Below the pieces are notes generated by a model. That model did not search any database, was not told the origin of the DNA, and worked only from the letters and a program-made list of their open reading frames with translations. From positions 124,001 through 188,000 of IMG/VR virus record IMGVR_UViG_3300017917_002466: a stretch of DNA of 64,000 nucleotides. One strand, written 5' to 3'. The translations under genes and the position numbers were made by a program. This document shows positions 3,791 to 62,741 of this stretch, in pieces (the stretch's first letter is position 1; every line of letters begins with the position of its first letter).

Positions 3791-4074
3791 GTTAGGCTCT
3801 TTCAATTGTGATAAGGTGGAAGCCATTAAAGACTTTGTGGTTCTTTCGGACTATGAAGGAAGCCCAATCCAACTCAATCCGCTGACCAAGGAAAGCACCG
3901 AAGTCGACTCGGCCAAAGTGAGGAAGAACAAAGGAAGTACCAGCCGAAGCCCTTGTCAGCTTCTTCTGGACGATTGAGGAGAGAATGTGATTGAGAACTT
4001 TGAACATATCGTTCCCCTTTCTGTACATCTAATATAATACAAAGGGGCCTGAATGTCAAGCCCCTTTTTGTATT

Positions 4075-4186
4075 TGGTGGCAGCGGCTGGATTCGAACCA
4101 GCATCGGGACGACCACTACTTATCTAGAATGTTCGTGACCGTCAGGCACACCATTGGCCCTTTGTGTATTTGTCCTACACGCTGCC
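4075..4186 (-). ncRNA. tRNA-like RNA (112 nt) with non-canonical anticodon region
   Basis: Acceptor stem GGCAGCG/CGCTGCC + A + CCA; T-arm GCTGG-TTCGAAT-CCAGC; central part too long and branched for a standard tRNA. Confidence 0.7.
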
Positions 4187-4206
4187 AGTAAGCTTGTTGA
4201 AGTTGA

Positions 4207-4509
4207 TTACACAAACTCGTAGCACTCGACAGCCGGACCGTTCCGCATATTCTCACTGACAATCACAGCCTGAACCATCGGCCACTCGGCACGGTCGATG
4301 TTGCGCCACTTGGCGATGTAGGAAACATTCTTGGCGCAAGCTATCGGCTCGTCACAACACATTGAGCCAATCTTGTAGCCGTTCTTGTCCATGAACTTCT
4401 CAGCCTGACTCTCAGCCTCAAAGTCCTCGGTGGACTCAAAGCGGGCGATCATCACAGCCTTGCGACCAGTTTCCCTTGCGATCGTCTCAGCGGTTGACTT
4501 GTTGCTCAT
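4207..4509 (-). CDS. hypothetical protein
   Basis: ORF MSNKSTAE with AAAGG RBS and own promoter. Confidence 0.65.
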   Translation of the reverse strand: MSNKSTAETIARETGRKAVMIARFESTEDFEAESQAEKFMDKNGYKIGSMCCDEPIACAKNVSYIAKWRNIDRAEWPMVQAVIVSENMRNGPAVECYEFV

Positions 4510-4823
4510 TGATTGTTTTCCTTTCTGTACATTCAATATACATCAAGCGAGTCGGTTTGTCAAGCTCTATTTTTGGTATTTCCGTACAGACATAATACTT
4601 GATACTCTTCACCATCAGAGTAAGGAATCTTTTTATTTGACATTTCAGCAAAAACAAACCGAACACCTTGATTTCGAAGGTCTTGAGCAGCTGCTTGAAG
4701 GTCAGAAATTAACTCTTCTACCGAACCACCTACGCTTATTTCAACTTCTACTCTTCGCATATTCCCTCCTTTTGTACATATAATATACAACAAATGAGCT
4801 TGAAAGTCAAACTCTTTTTATAT

Positions 4824-5591
4824 TTAGTAACATCTAAGCAAGCGCTTTGTGTGCAGGGCCCCGGCGGGAAGGTGGCGTCCGTCAAGTGAATACGTCTCCA
4901 GTCGACCGGGGCGCACCGCGACCGGCGGTCTGTGGCGGCTGTCCAATACACCCGCCCTGGGCACCAGAGAAAACAATCCGGAAAGCGTACTGATACTGTG
5001 ATTGTCGTAGTTGCTCAACTGGATATAACAGGCGTCCGACTGCGGGAGATCGGTGCCCACGGTCCAGAGCCATGAACTGCCGCTGAGCCGTGCGGTCGTC
5101 AACGTCTGGAAATTGATACCGCCGTCGGTTGACAGTTCGACGCGCAGGTCGGCCTGAAGACCGATCTGCCAGGTAATCTCATACGTCGAACCCAATTCGA
5201 TATTCTCTCCGCCGGTAGGCGTCAGGACGAGAAATGGAACATCCTCCTGCACCGTTACCGATATACTGTCAACGACGGTAAACTCTCCGTCGTAGGCAGA
5301 CAACTGGAACACGTACGCTCCCGCCATCGAGAACACAACCAGAGACGACTTCGCGCCCGGAGCCCGGATATCGGCTCCGCCGGCAGGCCCGTCAACCTGC
5401 GTCCACTGATATTGCAGTTGTGCATTGAGCAGGCTGTCGTCCGTCGCAGTGGCGAAAAACCGGAAGGTCTGTCCAAGTCGAAACGTCGTATCGTGTCCGG
5501 CATTGACAACCGGCGGATTATTCTGAACGCCCCACACCCCGGACGACAGCATCAAAATACCCAGAATTGCGGAAAAACCGAGCCGAGTCAT
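4824..5591 (-). CDS. secreted PKD/Ig-like domain protein of bacterial type, possibly C-terminally truncated
   Basis: Signal peptide; NNPPVVNAGHD, YQWTQVDGP and GAYVFQLSAYDG PKD/REJ-like motifs; second Ig-like domain (PTGGE, LSTDGGINF); YSLDGR tail; GC-rich. Confidence 0.75.
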   Translation of the reverse strand: MTRLGFSAILGILMLSSGVWGVQNNPPVVNAGHDTTFRLGQTFRFFATATDDSLLNAQLQYQWTQVDGPAGGADIRAPGAKSSLVVFSMAGAYVFQLSAYDGEFTVVDSISVTVQEDVPFLVLTPTGGENIELGSTYEITWQIGLQADLRVELSTDGGINFQTLTTARLSGSSWLWTVGTDLPQSDACYIQLSNYDNHSISTLSGLFSLVPRAGVLDSRHRPPVAVRPGRLETYSLDGRHLPAGALHTKRLLRCY

Positions 5592-5621
5592 AAAACATCA
5601 CCCCCATTTAATTCACATTGC

Positions 5622-5718
5622 CTACAACGTTTACGCAATGGGCGAAGCGCACCGTCTACAAAAAAGTTTATCTTCCTCCTTACCACAAACGGTGCATTTT
5701 GCCCTTGCGCTGTTGTGT
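5622..5718 (-). repeat. attC-like site
   Basis: Minus strand ACACAAC agcgcaagggc...gcaccgt...acggtgc...gcccattgcgtaaac GTTGTAG. Confidence 0.8.
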
Positions 5719-5734
5719 GATGTGTTGCGAGTAC

Positions 5735-5881
5735 CTAAATGTTAATAGCTATTGTTGTACAAATAAACCCTGATAATAATCCAATCCCACTACCAGCAGA
5801 TGGAGGTAAATTAAAAAGAATGCTTATGCCACAACTAATGAAACATCCAATAACAAAACCAATAATCACACGACACAACAT
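5735..5881 (-). CDS. cassette-borne 48 aa membrane peptide
   Basis: AGGAGG RBS; MLCRVIIGFVIGCFISCGISILF..., two hydrophobic segments. Confidence 0.6.
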   Translation of the reverse strand: MLCRVIIGFVIGCFISCGISILFNLPPSAGSGIGLLSGFICTTIAINI

Positions 5882-5924
5882 AATACCTCCTTTAAAAATT
5901 TAAGAGCAACATTTTGCACAACGT

Positions 5925-6170
5925 TTACGCAACGGTAGATGTGTTGCGCTTACTTGGTTCACAAATATCATCTACAAACTTAAACTGACAATCGGGATAC
6001 CACTTGCACTTCAAACATTGGCGCAACATTTCTACCTTGCGGTGTTGTGTGTTGCGGAGGAAGGCTACCTCAGATTCCAGAGCAATTATGCGCTTTTGAC
6101 TACGCACACAAACCAACATTTGAAAAAAACCGATTGCCACCAAAACGATGATTGAAATTGAGTTAAGCAT
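5925..6170 (-). CDS. cassette ORF (TM, coiled coil, Cys-rich tail encoded in attC)
   Basis: AGGAG RBS; reads through attC 5917-6050. Confidence 0.65.
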   Translation of the reverse strand: MLNSISIIVLVAIGFFQMLVCVRSQKRIIALESEVAFLRNTQHRKVEMLRQCLKCKWYPDCQFKFVDDICEPSKRNTSTVA

Positions 6171-6252
6171 AATTGCTCCTATAATGATAAAAAGCCGACC
6201 GTAGTTTCACACAACGGTTTGCCGTGTGTTGTGTGATGTTTAACCGCGCCTC

Positions 6253-6399
6253 CTAATTTTCTTTCGGCGCAGGCACTTGAGTAAACTTACCATCAAGAGT
6301 AACCTCGAAATAATTACCACAACAATCCCGAACCAATTCTATATCACGATAACCGCCTACAGGCTCGTAACCAAGTTTGCGAAGAATATAGCAGTTCAT
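6253..6399 (-). CDS. cassette-borne 48 aa protein
   Basis: AAGGAG RBS; MNCYILRKLGYEP... Confidence 0.55.
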   Translation of the reverse strand: MNCYILRKLGYEPVGGYRDIELVRDCCGNYFEVTLDGKFTQVPAPKEN

Positions 6400-6455
6400 T
6401 TTTGCTCCTTGCGCCGAACTATTAATTCAAAGCGCGGTTAAATTTCGCACAACGT

Positions 6456-6761
6456 TCAGCGCACAGCCGATGCGGTACGCCCCGTGCTACGCTTCCCACG
6501 TTTCGGCTTGCGCTTGTTGGCCGATGTGCCTGCCGACTCAAATTTTACCAGCGGGCGACCCGGCGTAGTTACGAGAAGTCGAAGAAAGTAAATCGCTGCA
6601 TCGTTAGCCACTTTGTGCAGCTTTTTATAAGAATCGCGGCAGCCTTGTTGCCTGAACGTGTCAACAAAAGCCATTGCGATATTCGACTGCCACGCATATC
6701 GATACCCTTCGTCTTTTTTCAGGGCTGCCGCCACCATTTTGAATGCCTGTTGAAACTTCAT
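6456..6761 (-). CDS. cassette ORF, paralog of 33538..33795
   Basis: MKFQQAFK..AL..D.G...A.Q.NIAMA shared with 33538..33795; basic tail encoded by attC. Confidence 0.7.
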   Translation of the reverse strand: MKFQQAFKMVAAALKKDEGYRYAWQSNIAMAFVDTFRQQGCRDSYKKLHKVANDAAIYFLRLLVTTPGRPLVKFESAGTSANKRKPKRGKRSTGRTASAVR

Positions 6762-6818
6762 TTTGCTCCTTTCGCCCGCCTACAAGATGGTTCGGCAGGC
6801 ATTTTGGCCAACGTGTTG

Positions 6819-7061
6819 CTAAACGGCTGATAGTTGCCGAATAGCCTGCAAAGATTGTCGAGCCAACACATACTGACCGTTGGACGTATACTCATCGTAA
6901 TCACGCAAACGTGAGGCAATTTCAGCCTTTAGTTGTTGTAGGCTGTTTGAGGAGGCTTCCATCAATTTTGCAGCACAAACAAGTGCCGCCTCTGCACTTC
7001 CAATATCTCCAACACTTAAAGCCAATTGAGCATTATGAATGTGTGATAGTATGTGCTGCAT
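6819..7061 (-). CDS. cassette ORF
   Basis: GGAG RBS; reads through attC. Confidence 0.6.
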   Translation of the reverse strand: MQHILSHIHNAQLALSVGDIGSAEAALVCAAKLMEASSNSLQQLKAEIASRLRDYDEYTSNGQYVLARQSLQAIRQLSAV

Positions 7062-7350
7062 ATAACTCCAATGAAAAGTTTATTTCCACCAACGTTGACA
7101 AATGCTGAAGTGCCCGCCTATATAACCTCTACCTTAATGTCAGCGGGCATTTGGGTCGAGGCATCCGAGCCAGCATTTGTTTGTTGTGTGCTGTGACGAC
7201 CGGCTACCTTGATTTTCTGTGCGGCGACCTTACGCAACTTATTGGCAACGACTTCCGCAACAGGATCGGGGCCGATGACTTCGATATTCATATGATTCCT
7301 TTCGCCGCACCTATTTATAGAAAAGCCGGGCGGCATGGCATCACAACGTT

Positions 7351-7617
7351 TCAGGCACTCGCCTGTTGTTTTTCTGCGACTCTATATTGACAAGACTCTG
7401 CCACGCAATACCCACGATTGACATTTAATGGGCACTTATGTTCCGATCCGAGACAGCAGAAAAATTGCAGGCTGCCTGTGTTGTATGAAGGTTTTGTTGA
7501 CTCCACCAGTGCTGCTTTTATGCGAAGCCACGCAAGATACTGGAGTCGCGACATACCGATATCACCCCAAGCCGAATCAACACTTTCTATATCTTCTTGT
7601 AGCATAAAAGCCTCCAA
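7351..7617 (-). CDS. first cassette ORF of array 1 (start may be 7605)
   Basis: Directly follows attI-like site; Cys-rich tail encoded in attC. Confidence 0.6.
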   Translation of the reverse strand: MEAFMLQEDIESVDSAWGDIGMSRLQYLAWLRIKAALVESTKPSYNTGSLQFFCCLGSEHKCPLNVNRGYCVAESCQYRVAEKQQASA

Positions 7618-7640
7618 TACGGTTCAACAAAACTTTTGTA

Positions 7641-7680
7641 CAACTAGTTAAATGATGTCATTCCCTTGTCTAACTCTTTG
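7641..7680 (-). other. attI-like recombination site, copy 1
   Basis: 40 bp identical to 33852-33891; ends at the GTT of the first cassette. Confidence 0.8.
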
Positions 7681-7697: not shown

Positions 7698-7726
7698 AAT
7701 ATACAACAGGAAACCGTTCTTGTCAA
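7698..7726 (-). promoter_or_regulatory. promoter facing cassette array 1 (Pc-like position)
   Basis: TTGACA-N17-TATATT immediately upstream of the attI-like site. Confidence 0.8.
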
Positions 7727-12163: not shown

Positions 12164-12264
12164 TATAAATACTGTTGTAGTAGGGAGACAGAGGAGTCGA
12201 CACCTTTTCTCAACCATACTTGAGATTATCCCTACTTAATCTACTTAACCTGTATGGAGGGAAT
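12164..12264 (+). ncRNA. TATAAATA promoter plus structured pseudoknot leader RNA, copy 1
   Basis: P1 agtaggga/tccctact; P3 tctcaa-ccatac-ttgaga; loop pairs with gtatgg overlapping the SD. Confidence 0.75.
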
Positions 12265-12957
12265 ATGCAAAAACTTTCTAAAGAAGATTTCATTTCCAAG
12301 GCTAATCAAATCCACCAAAATCGTTTTGATTATTCAAAAGTTGAATACTACGATAATAAAACTAAGGTTTGTATTATTTGCAAAGAACATAAAGAGTTCT
12401 ATCAACAACCAAGCAAACATCTTCTTGGTCAAGGTTGTCCAATATGTTCAGACCAAAAATTAACATTAGATAAGTTTATTTCAAAAGCAAATCAAACTCA
12501 TAACTTCTATTACGATTATTCTGAAGTTGTTTATGTTAACTGGAAAACTAAAATTTGTGTGGTATGTCCAGCACACGGAAAGTTCTGGCAAAGACCAGAT
12601 GTTCATTCGTCTGGTCAAGGATGTCCTATATGTAAATCTTCAAAAGGCGAAAAAGAAGTTGAAAAATGTTTAACCAACAAAGGAATTACATTCATTCCAC
12701 AAAAACGATTTGAAGATTGTCGTGGTAAAGTCAAACCTTTACCTTTTGACTTTTACTTACCAGAACATAATATTTGTATTGAATACCAAGGTAAACAACA
12801 CTACCTAAAAGAAAGTAAGTTCTATTCGGAAGAACTTTTACAGAATGATAAAACAAAAGCCCAGTATTGTTTCGATAACAACATTAGGCTTATCGTGATC
12901 CCATATTGGGAAGACGTTTATAAATGTCTACGATTTTTTGGTAGCGAAAGAGGTTGA
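12265..12957 (+). CDS. free-standing endonuclease (two zinc-ribbon repeats plus DUF559/Vsr-like PD-(D/E)xK domain)
   Basis: FISKANQIH...YDYS...C..H...GCPIC repeats; PFDFYLP...IEYQGKQH; GGAGG RBS. Confidence 0.8.
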   Translation: MQKLSKEDFISKANQIHQNRFDYSKVEYYDNKTKVCIICKEHKEFYQQPSKHLLGQGCPICSDQKLTLDKFISKANQTHNFYYDYSEVVYVNWKTKICVVCPAHGKFWQRPDVHSSGQGCPICKSSKGEKEVEKCLTNKGITFIPQKRFEDCRGKVKPLPFDFYLPEHNICIEYQGKQHYLKESKFYSEELLQNDKTKAQYCFDNNIRLIVIPYWEDVYKCLRFFGSERG

Positions 12958-24659: not shown

Positions 24660-25343
24660 ATGATTCTTTCTAAAACTGTTCAAGTTAAAATTAGCCGAAG
24701 AAATATTAAACATTATTTGTCTCTTGGTTATGTTATTCCAAAACATACTGATATTTATAATCGCCTTTGTAATCAAATAGGGATTCTAATTGAAGTATCT
24801 ATTGGACATTTACTCAAAGGAAGTAAAGTAAAAGTTCTTTGTAAATGTGACGAATGTGGAAAAGAAAATTTAACTTATTACAACGAATCTCTTAAATTCA
24901 AATATATTTGTAAAAATTGTGCTGCTAACCAACCTAAAAGATTAGAAAAGTTAAAAAATGCTATGACTGGTAAAAAACATTCCGAAGAAACTAAAAAGAA
25001 AATGAGTGAACATAATTGGGCAAAGAATCATACTGGAAAACTACATCCTTGTTACAATTCTAATCTTACTTTTGAAGACCGATATCTAGGTAGAAATAGA
25101 AATGTACAGCCAGAAAATTATCAATGGAAAAAGAAAGTTAAAGAAAGAGATAATCATATTTGCCAAAAATGTGGCTCAAAAGAAAATCTATGCGTTCATC
25201 ATCTTAACAACTATAAATCATTTGAAAACGAAAGGTATGACATTAAAAATGGAATTACCTTATGTGTTGGATGTCATAAGGAATTCCATAAAAGATATGG
25301 TCGTTTAACTACCAAAGAGCAAATAAAGGATTTTATAGGGTAA
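24660..25343 (+). CDS. HNH homing endonuclease with NUMOD3-like motif
   Basis: KHSEETKKKMSE; RDNHICQKCG...VHH...NGITLCVGCHKEFH. Confidence 0.85.
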   Translation: MILSKTVQVKISRRNIKHYLSLGYVIPKHTDIYNRLCNQIGILIEVSIGHLLKGSKVKVLCKCDECGKENLTYYNESLKFKYICKNCAANQPKRLEKLKNAMTGKKHSEETKKKMSEHNWAKNHTGKLHPCYNSNLTFEDRYLGRNRNVQPENYQWKKKVKERDNHICQKCGSKENLCVHHLNNYKSFENERYDIKNGITLCVGCHKEFHKRYGRLTTKEQIKDFIG

Positions 25344-25632: not shown

Positions 25633-26481
25633 CTAACGGGCATTTCGCACAACAGTGTCCTGCGCGGGGCTTCTTAGCGCATGGATGCGCTCTTCTGCTA
25701 TCCGGCAGTATTTCTCTTCCTTCTCAATTCCGATGTAATTCCGGCCAGTATTAATACAAGCGATTGCAGTAGTACCGGAACCAATGAACGGGTCTAAAAT
25801 TGTATCACCACAAAAAGAATAATAAGAAATCGCTTTTGTAGCCAACTCTAATGGGAACGGAGCTGGATGTCTATTACGCTCCGGGTTGATTTTCCATACA
25901 TTTGTTCTTTCGTAACCATCCAGCACTTTGGATTTTTTTATTATCTCTTGTGAATGAGAACGAATTGATTTGTCCAGTAAGCACCCCGGCTTTGAAAACA
26001 CCAGTATATATTCTGTAATATTAAATGTTTTGTACGCAACTGGTCTACGATGGTGCGAAAATTTGATTGCTCGACTTGATGCACCATCTGGCTTTACCCA
26101 TATAATGTCGTCTAAGAATGTCCATTTTTTTGAAAGCATAGAACAAACATCAAACGGTATTGGTATTCGTTTTGATTCTGTGCTTCTTTTTTTCCTCGCT
26201 TCAATAACGCATGACAAGTTCAGCACAAATATTCCCGCCGGTTTTATCTTTGTATGTGCCGTATTAAAAACTGTGTCTAAAAAAGATAGATACGAGGCAT
26301 ACGATTCGTATTTTGAATAACACCTTGCATTATAATACGGCGGTGATGTTAAAATCATATCCACGCTCTCGTCTGGTATAGTCTGCATGACTTCGAGGCA
26401 GTCCCCGCATGTTACGGTATTTGTCTTCGGCGCAGGACGCGCCGTGTCTTGCCCCGCGCCTATAATTTCAGAATTTGCCAT
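25633..26481 (-). CDS. DNA methyltransferase (N4-C/N6-A, beta-type motif order), last unit of array 2
   Basis: GDCLE, ILTSPPY, HPAPFP, ILDPFIGSGTT, GIE; ATG 5 nt after GTTAGGT. Confidence 0.9.
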   Translation of the reverse strand: MANSEIIGAGQDTARPAPKTNTVTCGDCLEVMQTIPDESVDMILTSPPYYNARCYSKYESYASYLSFLDTVFNTAHTKIKPAGIFVLNLSCVIEARKKRSTESKRIPIPFDVCSMLSKKWTFLDDIIWVKPDGASSRAIKFSHHRRPVAYKTFNITEYILVFSKPGCLLDKSIRSHSQEIIKKSKVLDGYERTNVWKINPERNRHPAPFPLELATKAISYYSFCGDTILDPFIGSGTTAIACINTGRNYIGIEKEEKYCRIAEERIHALRSPAQDTVVRNAR

Positions 26482-26516
26482 ATTGCACCTAACGGTTCGG
26501 CAAACGTAAGCCGTGC

Positions 26517-26738
26517 CTACGAATGCGTGCGACAAGGATATTTTACGTGAACGCACTGACGGTCGTAATTCTCCACACAGCACGTTGTTTGGCATGGCTT
26601 GCTTTGCCTGTTGTTTGTCTGTTGAGCGAGTACAGCGGATTTCAGAGTTTGCCAATGCAACCGCCCCTTAGTTTGCAAGTGCTCCGATAACTCATCAAAC
26701 CATTGAACCGCATCAGATATTTCGTTACTCATTGGCAA
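26517..26738 (-). CDS. cassette ORF with attC-encoded Cys-rich tail
   Basis: One ORF per cassette; AGGAG RBS. Confidence 0.55.
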   Translation of the reverse strand: MPMSNEISDAVQWFDELSEHLQTKGRLHWQTLKSAVLAQQTNNRQSKPCQTTCCVENYDRQCVHVKYPCRTHS

Positions 26739-26780
26739 ACTCCTATCAGTAAATTTAAGAGCGAAATTGCAAACAACGTA

Positions 26781-27095
26781 TCACGCACCCGCCCGTTGTT
26801 TGTCCGTTATCCACTTACAGCACCGAGGGCACCAAGCATCTATACCGCTATATGGATACACTGGTGCCTTACCACATGTAGGACAAATTACGGGCTGCGT
26901 GTGTTGTGGGACCGTGGGCAATTCTACCGCAATCTCTGCGCGGCGATCTTTTACCCATTGCTCCATTTCGATTTGATCATTACTCAATACCACCAACGCA
27001 TCATTAGGGATTTTCCCACCATGACGAAAAGGTGCCGTGACCTTGTTGACTCGGCAAAGGAACATCTCAAGCCTGTGTATGTCTTCGACGCGCAT
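26781..27095 (-). CDS. cassette ORF with attC-encoded zinc ribbon
   Basis: CPTCGK...CPRC lies inside attC 26771-26909. Confidence 0.6.
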   Translation of the reverse strand: MRVEDIHRLEMFLCRVNKVTAPFRHGGKIPNDALVVLSNDQIEMEQWVKDRRAEIAVELPTVPQHTQPVICPTCGKAPVYPYSGIDAWCPRCCKWITDKQRAGA

Positions 27096-27721
27096 AATAA
27101 TTCCTTTTGAATTGCCCATGTACCACAACGTTTAGCGCACGGGTGATAGTTTGCCCGTGGCTCGACAAAGCCCACACTTTACCATACCAGTACCAGGATC
27201 GTCGGATAAATACTCGCCACTACCCATACACGTAGGGCAAATTTTACCCTGCGCTTGTTGGTTGATGCGGAGGGAAGCCACCTCAGCCTCCAGCGTGGCG
27301 ATAGCCCGTTCAAGAGACAAAAACCGATTCATAACAAATGATGGATCAGAGAAATCAATTTCGTTTACCACGCCACACCTCCATGTATAAAAAGCTGACC
27401 GAAGTTTCAACCAACGTCTGCCCTATGCTGACGTTTCTGTTTCAGAAATGTGGGAGTCATCGACCGAACAGCATTGGGCTGTTGTTTGCTGTGCGCTCGC
27501 TTCCACAAAACCTGCGGTTTGCGGAGTATCGAGAGGGCACCAATTTGGTATTTCAAAAGTAACATTGATAACAGACCTACCGCCATATAGAGGATGGTTG
27601 CAAATAAATCCACTCTGACTGTAGCACAAGGGACATTCGTTACAGCAACTAATTTTGATTACACGCATGAGCAAACCGCCTATCTATTCTCAAAAGAGCG
27701 CATTGCAACCAACGGTATCGG

Positions 27722-27958
27722 CTACGCCTGAAGTTTGCCCGTACCGTGACAACGCCAACAGTCCTTACCATTGTTATAATTATTGGTAGAACCAGACCCA
27801 GCAGGGAAACAGTCAGGGCAAATTTTAGGCTGGCCGTGTTGGTGGATGTGACGCTTGCTTCCACCAATTTTGCGGCGGGTCTTAAACTGATCCTCGCCAT
27901 AGTGGCCGGTTATGTAATTATCAAGTTCCTGACTCATGCGCTTATCGTTGCCGAACAT
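27722..27958 (-). CDS. cassette ORF with DnaJ-like Cys-rich tail
   Basis: ICPDC..GSG...CWRCHGTGK; GGAGG RBS. Confidence 0.6.
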   Translation of the reverse strand: MFGNDKRMSQELDNYITGHYGEDQFKTRRKIGGSKRHIHQHGQPKICPDCFPAGSGSTNNYNNGKDCWRCHGTGKLQA

Positions 27959-28590
27959 ATTTCCTCCCGCCGCTTACCAGTTAAAAGCAAGCGGCATTTA
28001 CACCAAGTTTGGCGCATTCGCACGAAGTTACGCCGTCTTATCGCACCAACAAGTAGAACACTGCTTGTGAGCAACATCAAACGGGCATATATCCAAGCCC
28101 CATTTACAAGAAGGCGTAATTTTGTGCTGCGCCTGTTGGTGGATGTGCCGCGTTTCTTCCGCAATGTCAGGCTGGCAATCTTCCAGCATGATAGGGCAAG
28201 AACCGGCGTGATCCACTATTTCATCTTGAGTGCCAAAGAAGCCGCAATATTTACATTTGCCAGCCATATAATAAACCTTTCTTGAAACGCGGCATTTACA
28301 CCAACGTTTGCTCAACCGCACGATAGTTGTCGCAATCGATCTACCACTGCTGTAACATAAGACACATAAACCTTGTGCTCAACAAACTCTTTGTAAAGAC
28401 TATCGGCTATTGCGGCAATTTCGTGCTTGAGCTGTTGTACGTCTGTGGAAGGAGCGGCTTCCTCAGCTTTAAGTGCTCGCATCACGGCAGGGCAACGGTC
28501 TACGTTTATACCCATACCGCTACACGGCAAAATGAATGACTTGTTATCCACGCGAGCACCTCCTAAATCGTAAAGAGCGACTGGAATTGC

Positions 28591-28722
28591 GTACAACGGT
28601 TCAGCAACGTGCGCCGTGCCTACAGGGCTTCACGGCAATATGGACACCACACAAACCCAGTATGGGCCTTGCCAAGACGAAGCCACTCGTGAAATTGGCA
28701 TGGCGTACTTGCCGTGTTGTGC
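28591..28722 (-). repeat. attC-like site, near-identical to 29438-29570
   Basis: About 105 bp internal identity with 2 visible substitutions; encodes NTASTPCQ[FY]HEWLRLGK.HTGFVWCPYCREAL. Confidence 0.85.
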
Positions 28723-28844
28723 GATGAATTTGTTGACTCCCTAATGTAAGCGCGAATTGCTTCTAACGCGGTAAAATCTTTTGAATATTTACACATTCTC
28801 TCTACTTGCAAAACGGCTTCGTGTATATCCATTCGCGCCTCCAA
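28620..28844 (-). CDS. cassette ORF (body family shared with 31415..31663)
   Basis: ALE.IRA...ESTNSSHN shared; tail shared with 29468 cassette. Confidence 0.65.
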   Translation of the reverse strand: MEARMDIHEAVLQVERMCKYSKDFTALEAIRAYIRESTNSSHNTASTPCQFHEWLRLGKAHTGFVWCPYCREAL

Positions 28845-28895
28845 TATGGTTCAACAAACTTTTGCACAACGGTTCGGCAAACGGGCGAAGTTGGT

Positions 28896-29063
28896 TTACC
28901 TCGACACGGAGGGCTGTTCTACGCCAATTTCGCCCTTTGCCTGTTGTGCGATGTTGTTTTTAATTACCTTAATTTCAGCGGCGATTTCTCGTAACCGAAG
29001 ATTATTAGCTACAACAAAGCACCACAACGATAAATAAGCCAGAAAGACAAAAAACCATTTCAT
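28896..29063 (-). CDS. cassette-borne 55 aa membrane protein
   Basis: MKWFFVFLAYLSLWCFVV... Confidence 0.55.
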   Translation of the reverse strand: MKWFFVFLAYLSLWCFVVANNLRLREIAAEIKVIKNNIAQQAKGEIGVEQPSVSR

Positions 29064-29109
29064 AATCGCCGCCTATAAATCAAAGATTAAAAACCATTTC
29101 GCCTAACGT

Positions 29110-29406
29110 CTACCGCATCGCACGAAGTTGCCGCGCCCAAACCCACAACCTACGATAAACCCCTGACGGTAGATTATTGTTATTGTCTACAAAGGCTTCC
29201 ATTTCTGCGGCAATTTTGTGCTGCGGTTGTTGCACGGGGCGCTTCGCCCGAACCGTTCGGCCCGTTTCCAAATTATCCAGCGCGGTGCGGACTGCTATTG
29301 CCCCGCTGTGGCCGAGAGAATAATTGACAACGGCAACCGCTTTGCCGTTACGACATACCTCAAACGCATAGCCAGTATCTTCTATCTCATATTTGGCACC
29401 GCGCAT
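29110..29406 (-). CDS. cassette ORF
   Basis: AGGA RBS; tail ..WARQLRA shared with 30599 cassette. Confidence 0.6.
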   Translation of the reverse strand: MRGAKYEIEDTGYAFEVCRNGKAVAVVNYSLGHSGAIAVRTALDNLETGRTVRAKRPVQQPQHKIAAEMEAFVDNNNNLPSGVYRRLWVWARQLRAMR

Positions 29407-29437
29407 ATTAACATCCTATCTTTAAGGGCCGAATGGC

Positions 29438-29570
29438 GTGCAACGTTCTCGGCAATGTACGCCGTGCCTACAGGGCTTCACGGCAATATGGACACCACAC
29501 AAACCCAGTATGGTCCTTGCCAAGACGAAGCCACTCGTGATATTGGCATGGCGTACTTGCCGTGTTAGGC
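29438..29570 (-). repeat. attC-like site, near-identical to 28591-28722
   Basis: GCCTAAC...GTTGCAC. Confidence 0.85.
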
Positions 29571-29701
29571 GATGTAGAAAGCGACTCCTTAACGTCCTCA
29601 AATTTGACAAATTCACCGTCGTCGCACTCCTCCATCCGAGCATGCGTGCCATACATATCGCTCGTGACCTTATAATCGTACCGTGTCAAATTTACATCCA
29701 T
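29468..29701 (-). CDS. cassette ORF (NLTRY...G..VKF.D.KE body family)
   Basis: Body related to 32217..32474 and 31696..31962. Confidence 0.6.
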   Translation of the reverse strand: MDVNLTRYDYKVTSDMYGTHARMEECDDGEFVKFEDVKESLSTSPNTASTPCQYHEWLRLGKDHTGFVWCPYCREAL

Positions 29702-30598
29702 ATATCGCTCTCGCTTTCTATTTCGCATAACGTCTGCCACACGGTTGATCGTTACGGCCTACCTTGCCAATCACCAGATTCACGTTCAGGAACATCATAT
29801 CGCCGTTTAGATAAATCTCCATAATATGAATAGGCCGTAATGTCAACCTGTGGCTGTTGTACGTCTGTGGAAGGAGCGGATTCTTTAGTTAATGCGGTGC
29901 AGCCATGACCGACACCCTGAACACCTTGCCACTCCCACCGAGCTTGTATATAGTGACGACAATCTTTGAACATTTGCACCGCCTTATAGATCGTTTAGAG
30001 CGACTGGAATAGCGTACAACGTGTGCCAAAGTATGAAGGTGTGAAACAATTTGCGAAGCGAACATACTTTGGCTGTTGTGTGTTGGTTTTCGCTCCACAA
30101 TATTAAAAAGCAATTTGGCGATTGTAACGAGGCCAACTCAACCACCCTCGTATCCCATCGGGCGTCCCCTTTGGTGGTCTACATAGCCGTGGACGGCTTA
30201 GCCAAATTGCCTATAAATTCAAAGAGCGAAAACTTACACACAACGTATACGCTATTGTGAAGTAACTATGTTATTTAGGCGCTCCTCTAACTGTGAAATA
30301 AGCGACAATGCCTGTGGATACGACTCCATTGCTGACGGAACTGAATCCCGTAGAAACTTGAGCGCCGCCACAATAGCGTTGTTGTGCGAAGGTTTTAACG
30401 CCTCCTCACAAAACATTTTTATGCGACCCCACGCCAGTTGTTCAGACGAAGACCCTTTTGCATTAACAAGTGCGCTAACAGATGATAGTTCATTTTCAAG
30501 CATAAAAACTCCTAAATAAAAAGCGTTAAAACTTTTGCACAACGGGATCAGGCATTGCCCGACAGTTTGCGCGGTGCTTCACAAGCGATACAAACGCT

Positions 30599-30895
30599 TC
30601 ACAAAGCGCGAAGTTGCCGCGCCCATTTACTTAACTGCTCTGCACTTGGTACGCCACCGATATTTGCTATGCGCACACCATCCTCAAGCTCAGTGGCAAT
30701 TTGGGCGATAGCCGCGCTTTGTGTGTTGGTTGATGTGGAAGGAATGCCCACCTTATTTTTCTTTCGGCGGGTAATCTTTCTCCACCACGAATGAACAACG
30801 GAACAGATAATAGCAACCAATCCTATTGCCAACGCTACGCCAAGGAACACCAGCCCAAACACATCATGAAACGTCCATACGAAAATAGAACCCAT
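30599..30895 (-). CDS. cassette ORF, membrane protein
   Basis: AGGAG RBS; long hydrophobic segment. Confidence 0.6.
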   Translation of the reverse strand: MGSIFVWTFHDVFGLVFLGVALAIGLVAIICSVVHSWWRKITRRKKNKVGIPSTSTNTQSAAIAQIATELEDGVRIANIGGVPSAEQLSKWARQLRAL

Positions 30896-30954
30896 TTTTT
30901 TCTCCTTACCCGCCGAACTATTAATTCAAAAGCGGGATTTATTTTGCACAACGG

Positions 30955-31131
30955 TCAGCGCACAGCCGATGCGGTACGCTTACCATTTTTGCTACCCCGT
31001 TTCGGCTTGCGCTTGTTGTGTGCTGTTCGGCGCGACTCTAATCGCTCCCAGGCGGCCAGCTCCGCATCACCACGGGCCTCCGCCGCACCCATCACAGCAT
31101 CAAAATCATCAGGACCATAATCGTTTTTCAT
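30955..31131 (-). CDS. cassette ORF of 58 aa; basic tail shared with 6456..6761
   Basis: HNKRKPKRGSKNGKRTASAVR vs ANKRKPKRGKRSTGRTASAVR. Confidence 0.6.
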   Translation of the reverse strand: MKNDYGPDDFDAVMGAAEARGDAELAAWERLESRRTAHNKRKPKRGSKNGKRTASAVR

Positions 31132-31414
31132 TTGGCCGCCTTTACAATAACGCTCTCACGCCGAATGGCATCACAACGTTCACCGCACGCCGGATGCGGT
31201 ACTCCGTTTACGGCTGCGGGTGTTGTGCGAAGTGCGGCCCGCTTCCGCAAGTATTGGCGCGACTTCGCTACGGTGCGCCCACTGACCTTCCTTGTCAAAC
31301 ACAAACCTTGCAATTACTTTTCCACAGCAAATCTCAGTTTTCAATGAATACCACTGCAGTTTTTTTCGCGCCATTATAACCTCCAAAAGGGCCGCATTTT
31401 GCACAACGTCTGCG

Positions 31415-31663
31415 CTACTGGTGCTGTGCGCATACTAAGCAGGCATGTTTTTTACACTTTCGACTAGTAATTACACCACAGTCGTAACCAGCTCCGATGT
31501 GCGCTTCGCATGGCACCATAGCGCTGTTGTGCGATGAATTTGTTGACTCCGCCAGTGCTGCGCGAATGGTTTCCAATGCACATTTACAATCTGGACACTG
31601 GTGTTGATCCACGACTATTTGAAAATGAGCCAAGGCTTTCTTAATTTCCATTCGCGCCTCCAA
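31415..31663 (-). CDS. cassette ORF
   Basis: 5' end near-identical to that of the 28620 cassette. Confidence 0.6.
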   Translation of the reverse strand: MEARMEIKKALAHFQIVVDQHQCPDCKCALETIRAALAESTNSSHNSAMVPCEAHIGAGYDCGVITSRKCKKHACLVCAQHQ

Positions 31664-31695
31664 TATGGTTCAGCAAATTTTTCGCACAACGTATG

Positions 31696-31962
31696 CTAAA
31701 CGGCTGATGCCTTGCGCTGGATAAAATAGTCGTGAACATCTGGATACCACACACATTTACGACATTTATATAAATCCTCGTAATCGCTACCATAGTACGT
31801 TTCACATTCCTTACAGCGCAAGGTTTCAGCCTTTAGCGGTTGGTTGCCTGTTTGTGAAAGCTCCTTAGTGTCGGCAAATTTTAAATATACTCCGTCACCA
31901 CCTTGATGTATGTCGCAATCACAATCGCAACTATTAAACACAAATGTTCTGAAATTTGCCAT
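31696..31962 (-). CDS. cassette ORF with zinc-binding tail
   Basis: AAGGAG RBS; CKEC...CRKC inside attC. Confidence 0.6.
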   Translation of the reverse strand: MANFRTFVFNSCDCDCDIHQGGDGVYLKFADTKELSQTGNQPLKAETLRCKECETYYGSDYEDLYKCRKCVWYPDVHDYFIQRKASAV

Positions 31963-32216
31963 ATAATATCGCTCCTTTCACAAATTGCAACCAACGGTTG
32001 CCAAAGTATGAAGTTTACGTTTCGTAAATTTGCGAAGCGAACATACTTTGGCTGTTGTGTGTTGGTTTTCGCTTCACAATAATGTAAGGCGCGGGGCTGC
32101 ATAGGCTGAGTAGTGACCACCGCAGCATATATCTCCACCGAAAGTACGGTGAACCCTCAATTGTCACCGCGCCATATAAATTCCAAAGAGCGAAAACTTT
32201 CACACAACGGTTCGCA

Positions 32217-32474
32217 CTACTGCTGTTCGTGCCAATCGGTTCGTTTGCCAGTAAACCTACTGCACGCATGGCACGTGGGGCTGACACAACCACCTATGTT
32301 ACGTTTGCAAGATTGGCATGACAGCATAGCGCTGTTGTGCGATGAATTTAGAAGCTCCTTAATGTCGTCAAATTTAACCCAAGCCCCCTCATCGGATGCA
32401 ACCATTTGATGAAAATTATCCATAGTTTTAGTACGGTTAAACCACTCTAAATTATAACGGGTTAAATTTGCCAT
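32217..32474 (-). CDS. cassette ORF with zinc-binding tail
   Basis: 5' UTR identical to the 31696 cassette, different attC. Confidence 0.6.
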   Translation of the reverse strand: MANLTRYNLEWFNRTKTMDNFHQMVASDEGAWVKFDDIKELLNSSHNSAMLSCQSCKRNIGGCVSPTCHACSRFTGKRTDWHEQQ

Positions 32475-32868
32475 ATAATATCGCTCCTTTCACAAATTGC
32501 AACCAACGTTTACGCAACGGGTGAAGTCGCCACAACTTTTAGATTATGACAATACCCTTGCTTTAATGTACAATGATCCGATAAACACTTTAAACTACAC
32601 TCGATTTCACCCTTGCGTTGTTGGTTGTCTGTAAAATTTTCTACCTTAGATGCAAGAGCGGCACACCATACGAGATGGGTATACTGCTCCTTATCTAACG
32701 TAGATTTACAACCAATACTATCAAACCATTCTCTACAAGTGCCGCTCATATAAACTCCAAAGAAAATTTTATTGCAACCAACGTTTGACAAATGGTGAAG
32801 TCGTGTACTCACGATTTAGGCTTTTCGTTACCATTTGTTTGTTGTAAGATGTTTATGCCACTTCCTTA

Positions 32869-33165
32869 TTATCCGTTGGCGCATCTTTGTTTTTTGATAT
32901 AGTCTAAAAGTGTAACCTGTTCTTTTTCTGGTAACTGTTCAATCACTTTTTTATTGAAAAAATATTCATCCGTAAAACCACCAACAAAATCTAACCATTT
33001 TCCTGAAATCTTTGGTAATGGTAACTCGGTGCCCCGATAAGATGCAGACATAAATATCTCTGCTGGTACGCCGTTTAATTTCCGGTAAAGTGTTCCCCCA
33101 CCACTTTTCTGATGTTCCTCTGGATACGGTGGGTTCCAAACGCCTGTGAATTTTAGTTTTTGCAT
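32869..33165 (-). CDS. cassette ORF ending before its attC
   Basis: AGGAG RBS; 98 aa. Confidence 0.65.
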   Translation of the reverse strand: MQKLKFTGVWNPPYPEEHQKSGGGTLYRKLNGVPAEIFMSASYRGTELPLPKISGKWLDFVGGFTDEYFFNKKVIEQLPEKEQVTLLDYIKKQRCANG

Positions 33166-33496
33166 TTTTTCTCCTGCGCCAACATCTGAATATCAGAGTG
33201 GCATAAATTTCTTACAACGTTCACCGCACAGCCGATGAATTGCGCTGCCAGTTACAAGAAAGATTTTTTACACATACATCACCAAACCCTGCTTGATAAC
33301 TACACATTCCACTATATGCACAAAGCAATTTTTCGGCTTGCGGTTGTTGTGGGATGTGGAGCGCAGGTTCCTTAGTGTCCTGCGCGGCACGCTTCGCCCA
33401 AAAATCAATCCATTCATCACGAGTAATAGCTGGTTTAGATGGCATAATGTGACTTTCTATGAGCCGCGCCTATCATATAGACCTGCGCGGAATTTA

Positions 33497-33560
33497 CCAC
33501 AACGTCTGCGCAACTGCGCGTAGTTGGGCCTTGACAATTACGACGCTTGCGCTGTTGGTG
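33497..33560 (-). repeat. attC-like site of first cassette of array 2
   Basis: CACCAAC agcgcaa...ttgcgcagac GTTGTGG; R'' matches the cassette start GTTGGTG. Confidence 0.85.
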
Positions 33561-33795
33561 GATGTGCCTGCCGACTCCGCTTGCTCTGCGGGCGAACCGG
33601 CGTCAACAACAGCGCGAGGAAATGATCGGCGGCGCGATTGCCTATAGTGTGCCGTTTGGCCGATGAATCACGGCTACCCTCCCAACGAGCACAGTCGTAA
33701 TACGCCATGGCGATGTTGGCCTGATAGGCACGGTACAGCCCCTTGTCGCGCCGTAACGCCCTTGTGAATACCTTGAACGCCTCTTGAAACTCCAC
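33538..33795 (-). CDS. first cassette ORF of array 2, paralog of 6456..6761
   Basis: AGGAGG RBS; GTG start. Confidence 0.7.
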   Translation of the reverse strand: MEFQEAFKVFTRALRRDKGLYRAYQANIAMAYYDCARWEGSRDSSAKRHTIGNRAADHFLALLLTPVRPQSKRSRQAHPPTAQAS

Positions 33796-33851
33796 AGGCG
33801 CCTCCTTATTGTTCGCCCGCCTACAATCGCGTTCTCGGCAGGCATTTACAC

Positions 33852-33891
33852 CAACTAGTTAAATGATGTCATTCCCTTGTCTAACTCTTTG
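33852..33891 (-). other. attI-like recombination site, copy 2
   Basis: CAAAGAGTTAGACAAGGGAATGACATCATTTAACTAGTTG, identical to 7641-7680. Confidence 0.8.
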
Positions 33892-34095
33892 ATTTTCATA
33901 AAATTTTTTAAACTTATTGCTCAATTTATCTAATGGATAACCGTCTTGTATTAAAGCCCTTATTACAGCATACCGAATATATTTAGAACGAGTAATTTTT
34001 AGCTTTTCTCCTTGATGCAAACAACCAGTTGCTAAAACTGGTTCTAAATATATCTTATAGTCACTTCTTATCTTATCAGACCATTTTGCTTTCAT
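33859..34095 (-). CDS. small basic protein, possible ribbon-helix-helix DNA-binding protein, overlapping the attI-like site
   Basis: ITRSKYIRYAV motif; promoter TTGACA-N17-TATATT at 34102-34130. Confidence 0.5.
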   Translation of the reverse strand: MKAKWSDKIRSDYKIYLEPVLATGCLHQGEKLKITRSKYIRYAVIRALIQDGYPLDKLSNKFKKFYENQRVRQGNDII

Positions 34096-57489: not shown

Positions 57490-58185
57490 TCAATTCCTCT
57501 TTCTTACTTCAATACACTTTCAATACGATTCTTTATTGCGGTCTTTAATTGAAGTTCCTTTTTATACATCTAATATAAATCAAGGTAAAGGATTTGTCAA
57601 GTTATTTCTTTCTTGCTTCTCTAAATTGTTTCAATTGTTCAAGCTTACCATTTAAAAACTTAGCTGGTAAAAAGAAAATATCTCCACACACTTGAAGAAA
57701 TTCCACAATAGGTTCAAGTGTTTCAATTGCAACAACAAGTTCTTTATCAGCAATTGCTTCACCAACACGAAGTCTATTCAAAACATCCGAAGTTGTTTGA
57801 TGTTCGGATTTCATCTATCCTCCCTTCCAAAAGTCTCCATCCAATATGTTAAAATTTTAATAGATTCTTTATTATTAACTTTAAACTTCTTTTCAATATA
57901 TGGAGCAGCTCCAAACATGTTAGTTTTACCTGACTCTCTTAATTCATCAAGAAAGTCAAGATGATCTTGAGTTACATAATCTGGTCTTGACATTTAATCA
58001 TTCTCCATTGGTAGTGATTCTACAATTAATTTTCTTCCCCACTTAATATCCAGTTCTTCAATAGTAAAAGCTCTTCCTTTATCAATTTCATTTAGTTGAT
58101 GTACAATTTTGATTTCATCATTATCAGCATAATGAATTTTAGCAGGAAAATTAATCATGACTTAGACTCCTTCGTTTAGAATAAT

Positions 58186-61004: not shown

Positions 61005-61012
61005 ATTATTCT

Positions 61013-61321: not shown

Positions 61322-61344
61322 TTTAGCTTCTTGGTATGATGATT

Positions 61345-62127: not shown

Positions 62128-62144
62128 AACACTTTATTTTCGTA

Positions 62145-62675: not shown

Positions 62676-62741
62676 ACTATATACTCCTTTGTTGAGTTCA
62701 CAATAATATAATATCTTGTAACAAGTTTGTCAAGGACAATC

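Follow-up and report, generated by a model that had tools for sequence, protein, structure and literature searches.

Does a phage genome carry an integron-like array of gene cassettes, and if so, which enzyme could have built it? The question is raised by a 64,000-nucleotide stretch (the window hereafter; positions 124,001 to 188,000 of the IMG/VR record IMGVR_UViG_3300017917_002466), which lies in a 253,664-bp phage contig. A preliminary description had proposed that the minus strand of the window holds about 26 integron-like cassettes and that the phage builds accessory gene arrays by IntI-type recombination. Our analysis confirmed the array, which is far beyond chance; the proposed interpretation was supported only in part, because the enzyme found beside the same site type in related phages is not of the IntI type.

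An array of hairpin-closed cassettes in a phage genome

The coordinates and strand given in the preliminary description are right. The first boundary is the G of GTTGGTG at 33855, and the last hairpin-closed cassette ends at 26493; from there, one DNA methyltransferase unit without a recognisable hairpin runs on to about 25634. We counted 25 hairpin-closed cassettes (A01–A25), the methyltransferase unit and one 52-nt remnant. The GC content of the array is about 47%, whereas that of the flanks is about 33%. The features of this array (array 1) are as follows; L013, L016, L020, L028 and L030 denote loci in other phage contigs.

34102–34130, minus: phage promoter (TTGACA-17-TATATT) that would drive the 78-aa ORF and array 1
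33859–34095, minus: 78-aa phage ORF directly upstream of array 1; no homology to the ORF upstream of the L016 array
33852–33891, minus: attI-like sequence, copy 1 (40 nt ending TAACTAG|TTG), overlapping the 3' end of the 78-aa ORF
25634–33855, minus: array 1
33497–33560, minus: site A01 (R'' CACCAAC ... R' GTTGTGG)
33212–33352, minus: site A02
32776–32847, minus: site A03
32501–32626, minus: site A04; the whole cassette (32782–32507) is 91–94% identical to cassettes in L013 and L020
32202–32340, minus: site A05
31989–32060, minus: site A06 (cassette without a convincing ORF)
31684–31845, minus: site A07; the whole cassette (31995–31690) is 93.6% identical to L016 9964–10277
31401–31532, minus: site A08
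31171–31228, minus: site A09
30946–31021, minus: site A10
30589–30731, minus: site A11 (degenerate, R' GTTTGTA), followed by the 52-nt remnant (30595–30543) up to the next R' at 30543
30238–30387, minus: site A12
30014–30081, minus: site A13 (cassette without a convincing ORF; both ends like A06)
29725–29862, minus: site A14
29438–29570, minus: site A15 (hairpin module 95% identical to A18, N-terminal part unrelated)
29101–29235, minus: site A16
28864–28949, minus: site A17
28591–28722, minus: site A18
28299–28440, minus: site A19
28001–28141, minus: site A20 (R' has lost its G: AAAC-TTGGTG)
27707–27844, minus: site A21
27409–27487, minus: site A22 (hairpin module 91–92% identical to modules in L013 and L030)
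27123–27263, minus: site A23
26771–26909, minus: site A24
26487–26616, minus: site A25 (last hairpin of array 1)
25634–26493, minus: N6/N4 DNA methyltransferase unit

The methyltransferase unit starts like a cassette (GTTAGGTGCAAT), and the same cassette start is seen in L028. It is followed by an 18-nt cassette-start remnant and then GTTAGGAGG, which we infer to be the likely right half of the original insertion site.

The cassettes are mostly about 290 bp in size. Each starts with TTGNNN of an R' box, carries a Shine-Dalgarno sequence and one small ORF, and ends in an imperfect hairpin. The layout of the hairpin is R'' (NNNCAAC), one A, a 12-bp L stem with one bulged base, a coding loop, a 4–5-nt spacer and then the G of R'. 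As stated in the preliminary description, the cargo consists of small phage-type genes, here ORFans; homologues of one cargo protein lie in phage contexts.

A second array and the sequence shared by both array starts

One further array, which the preliminary description missed, was found at 7644 to about 4830. It contains 7–8 cassettes, seven of them hairpin-closed (B01–B07), which brings the genome to about 33 cassettes in two arrays.

7698–7726, minus: phage promoter directly upstream of attI-like copy 2
7641–7680, minus: attI-like sequence, copy 2
4830–7644, minus: array 2, B01–B07 plus a GC-rich PKD-domain protein unit (4824–5591)
7341–7486, minus: site B01
7087–7189, minus: site B02
6806–6941, minus: site B03
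6447–6522, minus: site B04
6209–6234, minus: site B05 (minimal: R'' and R' only 12 nt apart)
5916–6050, minus: site B06
5622–5718, minus: site B07

Both arrays begin right after the shared 40-nt attI-like sequence, also missed before; 37 nt of copy 1 are identical to 7641–7677, and only two copies are present in the window. Each array lies behind a TTGACA-17-TATATT promoter. No such promoter occurs inside the arrays (no 11/12 promoter match was found inside array 1), and the next one after that of array 2 is at 4810–4782, after the array.

Sequence and folding signatures of the sites

In integrons, the crossover in G|TT leaves the last 6 nt of R' to the next cassette, so that R'' can match the start of its own cassette. 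In array 1, R'' is the complement of the cassette's own start in 19 of 25 cassettes, exactly the number given in the preliminary description. The automated scoring gave 17 exact matches; with corrected R' positions, A12 and A21 also match. Only 4 of 25 match the closing R', and 3 of those are cases where both R' boxes are identical. Shuffled pairings had been named beforehand as one way to refute the signature; in 100,000 permutations, run with the automated scoring, the mean was 2.6 and the maximum was 10. In 11 other loci, 34 of 56 cassettes match their own start, against 8.4 for permuted pairings. In array 2, however, only 2 of 7 cassettes match exactly, and most of the rest differ by one base.

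The hairpins are supported by base pairing. The 12 bp next to the R boxes pair at 11.0 of 12 on average, compared to 7.6 with swapped partners, with many compensatory pair types. On an uncorrected MAFFT alignment, 68% of cells pair against 56% in shuffles (0 of 500 reach it), and the best value is at zero slide. The DNA folding z-scores are about -3.4 and -4.5 on the two strands. The non-coding strand folds more stably in 28 of 30 sites, by 2.1 kcal/mol on average, which is the direction reported for canonical attC bottom strands (PMC5027507). The ORFs cross R'' in two different frames (xQQ or SHN), so the conservation is at the DNA level.

We also built one covariance model from 11 short sites. 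At E <= 0.0025 it finds 32 sites, 21 of which were not in the training set; all are on the minus strand and inside the two arrays. Nothing else in the 64 kb reaches E <= 1.

Cassettes shared between phages

The same site type occurs in many other phage contigs. Homology blocks between cassettes start exactly at the G of R'. Two near-identical phages, L018 and L016, are 99.98% identical in the flanks and differ by two cassettes, which are inserted exactly at ...CAGTAG|TTGT in the first array position, next to a non-repeated phage sequence. Whole cassettes shared with other phages end within 4 nt of both R' boxes. Cassettes A07 and A04 are 91–94% identical in DNA to cassettes in L016 and L013, although the backbone proteins of those phages are only 28–51% identical to those of the phage studied here. 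In addition to the G of R', there is a second sharp breakpoint at R''.

These data bear on one alternative, a tandemly amplified family of small paralogous phage genes, whose conserved hairpins would act in RNA or DNA regulation (processing, attenuation or protection of the 3' end) and whose genes would be reshuffled by the very active homologous recombination of T4-type phages at short conserved stretches, as proposed for PeSL cassettes. PeSL shuffling is documented in T4-type phages (PMC2839356, PMC4122927), and PeSL-type promoter units are abundant elsewhere in the window. The modules are uniform in size (N-part about 150–165 nt, hairpin part about 60–70 or 125–135 nt), and conserved leaders of 35–45 nt and about 20 nt before R'' are shared by otherwise different cassettes. 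The very uniform cassette size and the mosaic blocks also fit a family shaped partly by homologous recombination. However, homologous recombination does not predict that R'' is the complement of the cassette's own start rather than of the R' it faces. The exact G|TT position of the difference between L018 and L016, the absence of promoters in the arrays and the tyrosine recombinase next to the array start in at least four independent contigs (described below) also speak against this alternative, which we consider unlikely.

A second alternative is an ordinary bacterial integron fragment (CALIN) picked up from the host, or bacterial DNA joined to phage DNA by mis-assembly. The GC difference would fit, and CALINs with two or more attC sites, including methyltransferase cassettes, have been reported in phages (PMC9892861). 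However, the same site type lies in many independent phage contigs from JGI, ENA, Logan and IMG/VR, always among phage genes, and both arrays of the window start at the same phage sequence behind phage promoters. One scan of 185,579 species genomes gave 74 single hits, close to the chance expectation. Only three short MAG-binned contigs held real arrays; one of them carries AAA+/VWA genes like those of the window, and one carries the Xer-like integrase. Together with the non-IntI nature of the linked recombinase, these observations make this alternative very unlikely.

A Xer-like recombinase beside the arrays of other phages

No recombinase was found in the window, as the preliminary description had noted. 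None was found in the 111 kb of the contig that were read (positions 104,272–215,723, leaving about 142 kb unread; the phmmer search covered loci up to about 206.5 kb), and one motif scan of IMG/VR, which holds the whole contig, found none in this phage.

Different from this phage, the loci L033, L044, L070 and L123 of other phage contigs encode one 268–298-aa tyrosine recombinase immediately upstream of the attI core and the array; a fifth contig, L122, ends inside its first cassette. In L070, L122 and L123, the same core follows the integrase stop. The model trained on the window hits those arrays but none of 19 control integrase loci. The recombinase is Xer/XerA-like. It scores below the NCBIfam integron-integrase cut-off and aligns to the solved IntI4 only in two pieces, so the IntI-specific domain is missing. 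The term IntI-type is therefore not supported for the enzyme. In one sub-family the recombinase is co-oriented with the array, whereas in one low-GC sub-family it is divergent.

We also considered whether the hairpins are ends of single-strand transposons of the IS200/IS605 type or targets of TnpB-associated elements, moved by one HUH/Y1 transposase that recognises hairpins and guide-target pairing. IS605 OrfB/TnpB genes lie 2–7 kb from the arrays in L013 and L016, and that family also uses folded single strands. However, no Y1 transposase or TnpB was found in the window, and no Y1 transposase was found next to TnpB in L013. The AAC/GTT inverted boxes, the G|TT crossover and the adjacent Xer-like recombinase fit tyrosine-recombinase sites instead, and we regard this possibility as remote.

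A proposed phage-borne recombination system

Taken together, these observations indicated, with good though not complete confidence, that the region is one of two arrays of promoterless mini-cassettes belonging to a phage-borne, integron-like site-specific recombination system. The evidence is comparative throughout, and no circular cassette or recombination product has been seen. Sequence comparison shows that cassettes are inserted and lost by a crossover inside GTT of R', and that new cassettes enter at one attI core (TAAC-N1-3-TAG|TTG) that lies behind a phage promoter. The remainder is inferred. The cassettes would move as circles in which the start of the cassette completes the R box, which would explain the own-start complementarity; the substrate would be a folded single strand, most likely the more stable non-coding strand. 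By association only, the catalyst would be the short Xer/XerA-like recombinase. In this phage, where the recombinase is next to neither array, it would have to act in trans from the unread part of the genome, from a co-infecting phage or from the host; alternatively, the arrays are now frozen. The second breakpoint at R'', which lies in frame inside the ORFs, lets N-terminal and C-terminal gene halves be recombined, by a mechanism not established here.

Comparison with related systems

Like integrons, the system has co-oriented promoterless cassettes behind a promoter, with new cassettes at the attI-proximal position and, in relatives, a tyrosine recombinase gene next to attI. Its sites (64–162 nt) are imperfect hairpins with outer R''/R' boxes holding the conserved AAC/GTT, inner L''/L' boxes, an unpaired spacer, a bulged base and a variable loop. 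Different from integrons, the recombinase is 264–298 aa in size, is closest to archaeal XerA and lacks the IntI-specific domain. The site geometry also differs: the spacer is 1 nt on one arm and 4–5 nt on the other, and the single bulged base sits on the L' arm, the arm that canonical attC keeps free. A geometry that is the reverse of canonical attC weighs against the model. Further differences are the ORFs, which read through the hairpin and stop in the spacer, the cassette size of only about 290 bp, the second breakpoint at R'', and the carriage by phages, with two arrays in one genome and no integrase nearby in this one.

The CALINs and integron fragments of phage genomes (Qi et al. 2023, PMC9892861) are likewise clusters of attC-type sites without a neighbouring integrase in virulent phage genomes, with DNA methyltransferase among the cargo. 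They were found with IntegronFinder, with a minimum of two attC sites per cluster, and some of those sites are recombined by IntI1. Here, 32 sites are present in two arrays with their own attI core, relatives have the linked non-IntI recombinase, and the cassette pool is shared among phages.

PeSL cassettes of T4-type phages (PMC2839356, PMC4122927) are also small accessory genes of large phages flanked by repeated motifs with stem-loops, differ between close relatives and are thought to move as modules. PeSLs are promoter plus stem-loop units recombined through homology, whereas the array sites carry no promoter, show AAC/GTT boxes and own-start complementarity, and are linked to a tyrosine recombinase.

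In Xer recombination on folded single strands (XerCD with the CTX phage attP hairpin; archaeal XerA/dif), one Xer-family tyrosine recombinase acts on a site formed by a folded single strand, with one strand exchange resolved by replication. Xer systems resolve dimers or integrate whole elements at dif, and are not known to build arrays of cassettes. Archaeal integrons (Ghaly et al. 2022, PMC9668308) likewise extend the integron principle outside Bacteria; their integrases keep the IntI-specific domain, whereas the phage recombinases do not.

Organization of the cassette array and its hairpins

In the window, the cassettes are organized as two arrays on the minus strand, which are followed by one larger unit each.
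33855 down to 26493, minus strand: 25 co-oriented units of array 1
continuing down to about 25634, minus strand: 283-aa N6/N4 DNA methyltransferase unit
7644 to about 4830, minus strand: array 2, seven hairpin sites plus a GC-rich PKD-domain protein unit

The units of array 1 are 213-436 nt in size, and most of them are 275-305 nt. Each unit contains a Shine-Dalgarno sequence and, in most, one ORF of 55-115 aa. The GC content is about 47% in the array, compared to about 33% in the flanks. Two cassettes, A06 (32208-31995) and A13 (30244-30020), have no convincing ORF; they share the first 38 nt and the last 55 nt but differ in the middle, and they may encode small RNAs. Family scans of 30 cassette proteins gave almost nothing. 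Signs of decay could also be observed in array 1: at 28007, site A20 has lost the G of its R' box, and one 52-nt hairpin-less remnant (30595-30543) follows site A11.

Every unit ends in the same kind of imperfect hairpin. It starts with the R'' box (NNNCAAC, always preceded by C), which is followed by a 1-nt spacer (A in 31 of the 32 sites of the two arrays) and one 12-bp stem; the stem is usually interrupted after 6 bp by one bulged base, mostly G on the coding strand, on the 3' arm. A loop of variable length, a 4-5-nt spacer and the R' box (GTTGNNN, usually followed by G/N-AAAT) complete the site. In the long class of sites, a third helix, recognized by eye, follows beyond a small internal loop. 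The ORFs run through R'' in either of two frames (xQQ or SHN), and usually stop in the spacer, 5-11 nt before R'. The conservation is therefore in the DNA, and the whole hairpin is coding.

Hairpins and boundary signature are beyond chance

To investigate whether the hairpins are more than chance, we first analyzed their pairing. The 12-bp stem pairs at 11.0 of 12 positions on average, compared to 7.6 when the 5' and 3' halves of different sites are combined, and most positions show several pair types. RNAalifold predicted no structure on a MAFFT alignment of 16 long sites, in which the arms are out of register because the spacers are 4 or 5 nt and the bulges are 0-2 nt. However, on the same unedited alignment, the structure that we supplied by hand gave 68% paired cells against 56% in shuffles (0 of 500 reach it), and it is best at zero slide. 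When folded as DNA, 26 of 30 sites on the coding strand and 29 of 30 on the other strand fold more than 2 sd better than shuffles; the non-coding strand is the more stable one in 28 of 30 sites.

A loose regular expression for the hairpin was not discriminating over the whole window, with 53 hits against about 21 in shuffles, whereas a covariance model was. Built from 11 short sites, the model finds 32 sites at E <= 0.0025, all on the minus strand and all in arrays, and 21 of them are outside the training set. Although the E-values are rough, owing to a shortened model calibration, nothing else in the window reaches E <= 1. Rfam, which does not contain the attC model, and tRNA scans of the window returned nothing.

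The key signature of the preliminary description, that R'' complements the start of its own cassette rather than the R' that closes the hairpin, was confirmed. In 19 of 25 cassettes the four variable bases of R'' are the exact complement of the R' at the cassette's own start, and in 4 of 25 they match the closing R'; 100,000 permutations gave a mean of 2.6 and a maximum of 10. This is the signature of a crossover between G and TT of R', as in integrons.

A second array, the attI core and the promoters

Array 2 was not recognized in the preliminary description. Both arrays start immediately after the same 40 nt, which end in TAACTAG/TTG (here and below, a slash marks the crossover point). This sequence occurs only twice in the window, in both cases without an integrase, and IMG/VR holds it only in this contig. 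In array 1 it overlaps the end of one 78-aa phage ORF, which has a strong phage promoter just upstream; in array 2 it follows such a promoter directly. The 78-aa ORF and the 84-aa ORF upstream of the array in L016, a contig of another phage, are unrelated, so there is no conserved array-adjacent accessory gene.

The promoter (TTGACA-17-TATATT) was identified by consensus scans only. It precedes nearly every small gene at 2-11.5 kb, but no 11/12 match occurs inside either array. Between 2000 and 11500 on the minus strand, fourteen near-perfect copies, usually GGGCTTGACAA...TGTATATTA, each precede a small gene, and two of them are embedded in stem-loops (4067-4041 and 3512-3496). They look like the PeSL-type promoter cassettes of T4-type phages, a second and different kind of modular unit in the same genome. 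The PeSL units flank mobile genes with a repeated early promoter plus stem-loop; in our case, such units flank the non-array genes, and the array sites lack this feature.

Search for a recombinase in the phage genome

The window is positions 124,001-188,000 of a 253,664-bp JGI/IMG-VR contig. Its genes are those of a large virulent-type phage; they include Thg1, RlaP, RtcB, RNA ligase and a CCA-adding enzyme, an NAD salvage set, NAD-dependent DNA ligase, homing endonucleases and a T4 Y16D-family protein. Megablast of the array and the flank against 50,697 phage records gave no match, and a search of IMG/VR for close relatives of the neighbouring 123-aa gene returned only the contig itself.

As the preliminary description had stated, the window encodes no integrase; no recombinase domain was found in any ORF of at least 95 aa. 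None was found in the 111 kb of the contig that we examined (104,272-215,723) either. There are 32 sites and no recombinase within 64 kb. CALINs are clusters of two or more attC sites with no integron integrase nearby; the arrays would belong to them only if IntegronFinder calls their sites as attC. No Y1 (HUH) transposase TnpA of the IS200/IS605 type was present in the window. IS605 OrfB/TnpB genes lie a few kb from the arrays in two other phages (L013 6821-7957 and L016 16921-18273), without a Y1 transposase; in L013, none was found next to TnpB.

Related arrays and cassette mobility

Two cassette proteins have relatives at 90% identity or more on other contigs, and those contigs carry arrays of the same site type among phage genes. 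They are L013, L016-L019, nine JGI contigs, several IMG/VR contigs of 47-264 kb and three short MAG-binned contigs. A pattern scan of species genomes gave mostly single chance hits. The window-trained model gives 128 hits in these contigs, co-oriented within each locus. The own-start rule holds in 34 of 56 scorable cases, against 8.4 expected; the sites of these loci were listed by our own scanner and by the model, not from curated annotation.

Three comparisons show mobility. First, L016 and L018, which come from different samples, are 99.8-99.98% identical in the flanks, but differ by two complete cassettes (604 nt) inserted exactly at ...CAGTAG/TTGT, the first position of the array. Second, cassette A07 of the window is 93.6% identical to L016 9964-10277, and A04 is 91-94% identical to cassettes in L013 and in L020, another contig. 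In both cases the homology ends within a few bases of both R' boxes, although the backbone proteins of these phages are only 28-51% identical to those of the window phage. Third, half-cassettes occur in different combinations. The first 164 nt of A04, up to and including R'', occur at 97-98% identity in L022 and L023 joined to a different hairpin module, whereas its hairpin module (151-280) occurs in L024 and L025 behind a different N-terminal part. The same pattern is seen inside the window for A15/A18, A08/A18 and A10/B04. R'' is therefore a second sharp breakpoint. We also considered a crossover only at R'', with the sites inverted relative to the genes, as the bulge position would suggest under IntI rules; this was rejected, because homology blocks and indels start at R'.

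L016 also contains large cassettes (4012-5303 and 10273-about 11000) that carry genes on the opposite strand: 198 aa plus a weak Csx3-like 143 aa in one, and 159 aa in the other. They have conserved ends (the first 55 nt and the last 210 nt) and an R'' (TTACAAC) that matches their own start.

A Xer-like recombinase lies next to the arrays in relatives

Among the ORFs next to arrays in other contigs, three carry PF00589 with an N-terminal SAM-like domain.
L033 4143-4946: tyrosine recombinase, same strand as the cassettes
L044 10226-11119: tyrosine recombinase, same strand as the cassettes
L070 249-1112: tyrosine recombinase, same strand as the cassettes

Two further family members were retrieved, L123, which has an array downstream, and L122, whose contig ends inside the first cassette. 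In all of them the gene is on the same strand as the cassettes and ends 8-45 nt before an attI core. Like L122, the L002 assembly breaks at such a junction: these independent assemblies break exactly at the attI core or inside the first cassette, as expected for a repeated or variable junction.

Table. attI cores of the recombinase-linked loci and of the window.
L123: CATCTTAACTTAG/TTAGAC
L070: ACATAACTTAG/TTGTAA
L122: ATAATAACTAG/TTGTAG
L044: GTATAACAAGTAG/TTGGTT
L033: GTATAATAAGAAG/TTGTGT
Window, both arrays: CATCATTTAACTAG/TTG

In L033, L044 and L123 the R'' of the first cassette matches that start; in L070 it differs by one base.

The recombinases of L033, L044 and L070 are 268-298 aa in size. 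The proteins have the R-K-H-R-H-Y set, and are closest to archaeal XerA, both in NCBIfam and among solved structures; however, they fall below every curated cut-off. The best NCBIfam hit is XerA (NF040815) at 130-202 bits, compared to a cut-off of 220. Integron integrases are tyrosine recombinases with an IntI-specific additional domain around patch III (PMC9668308). The phage enzymes score 114-149 bits on the integron-integrase model TIGR02249, against a cut-off of 265, and match this model and the solved IntI4 (2a3v) only as two separate stretches, so the IntI-specific domain is absent.

One low-GC group of viral contigs from IMG/VR (L132, L136, L138, L147, L134 and L139 among them; 26-29% GC) has 264-271-aa relatives of the recombinase, which are placed divergently from the arrays, as in classical integrons. 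Their sites form a second class (NNNTAAC...GTTANNN, without a bulge and with a 5-nt spacer) in arrays of up to 20 sites, and the own-start chains are long; the window model does not hit those sites. The window contig did not appear among 84 IMG/VR relatives found with two catalytic-motif patterns, nor among the top 120 of 4,426 database homologues.

Comparison with integrons and proposed mechanism

The system works like an integron in several respects. The sites are imperfect hairpins with R''/R' and L''/L' boxes and the conserved AAC...GTT, the crossover lies between G and TT of R', and in relatives the attI core is next to the integrase gene and a first-position difference is observed. The integrase and two structural features of attC are different. 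The unpaired central spacer of canonical attC is about 5 nt on both arms; here it is 1 nt after R'' and 4-5 nt before R'. By the rules worked out for IntI (PMC5027507), the extrahelical bases should sit on the arm opposite the AAC of the recombined (bottom) strand. Here the single bulge lies on the L' arm, the same arm as the AAC of the non-coding strand, which the boundaries imply is cut if the cut is at R'. Either the enzyme reads the site differently, or both arms can be cut; the latter would also explain the breakpoints at R''. The observation of an integron-like array in the preliminary description held, and its interpretation is partly supported; the IntI type is not supported for the enzyme found in relatives.

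All our evidence is comparative. The comparisons establish the sites, their boundaries, the attI core, cassette gain or loss at the first position, cassette sharing, and the linkage to a Xer-like recombinase in relatives. On the other hand, circular intermediates, single-strand folding, the strand that is cut, expression of the cassettes from the upstream promoters, as for the promoterless cassettes of integrons, and the role of this recombinase as the catalyst are inferred.

Integrons are regarded as a bacterial, and lately archaeal, device defined by IntI, and phages were known only to carry a few stray attC sites. The papers that could be searched report only small attC clusters in phages (PMC9892861) and PeSL cassettes in T4-type phages (PMC2839356, PMC4122927); among them we found no report of phage arrays with a Xer-like recombinase. 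In the phage genomes the whole logic recurs: a recombinase next to attI, hairpin-bounded cassettes without detected promoters, first-position insertion and a shared cassette pool. The recombinase comes from a different branch of the Xer/IntI group, and the site geometry differs. If confirmed, this would give a mechanism for the long-noted 'ORFan' hyperplastic regions of large phages, and would bear on how integrases that read folded DNA evolved from Xer enzymes. It would also supply a natural example of recombination sites embedded in reading frames, and possibly of programmed swapping of gene halves, and open a large pool of small phage proteins, likely host-takeover or counter-defence factors, that can be indexed through their sites.

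One further-reaching reading is possible, although we consider it slightly less likely than not. In this view, large and other phages run their own integron analogue, driven by a Xer-type recombinase that lacks the IntI domain, which stocks a pool of about 290-bp coding cassettes circulating among unrelated phages. Because the recombination hairpin is itself coding and has a second, in-frame crossover point at R'', the system would also swap the N- and C-terminal halves of small proteins, making a combinatorial generator of phage accessory proteins.

Other features of the phage genome

Two homing endonuclease genes lie on the strand opposite to the arrays.
24660-25343, plus strand: HNH/NUMOD3 homing endonuclease gene, directly beyond the end of array 1
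12220-12957, plus strand: DUF4379-type homing endonuclease gene

One complete-looking NAD salvage set was observed at 56323-63176 of the window and in locus L007; it contains NAPRTase, NAD synthase, NUDIX, an isochorismatase-type amidase and a cytidylyltransferase-like enzyme. RNA repair genes (Thg1 and RlaP; RtcB and RNA ligase further along the contig) cluster near arrays, also in L016 and in locus L028. At about 4085-4140 on the minus strand, a tRNA-like 3' end (GGTTCGAATCC...GCCACCA) lies in an intergenic stretch, although ARAGORN reported no tRNA or tmRNA in the window. At about 1800-2350, there is an odd low-complexity stretch, rich in G-runs on the minus strand, with no convincing ORF.
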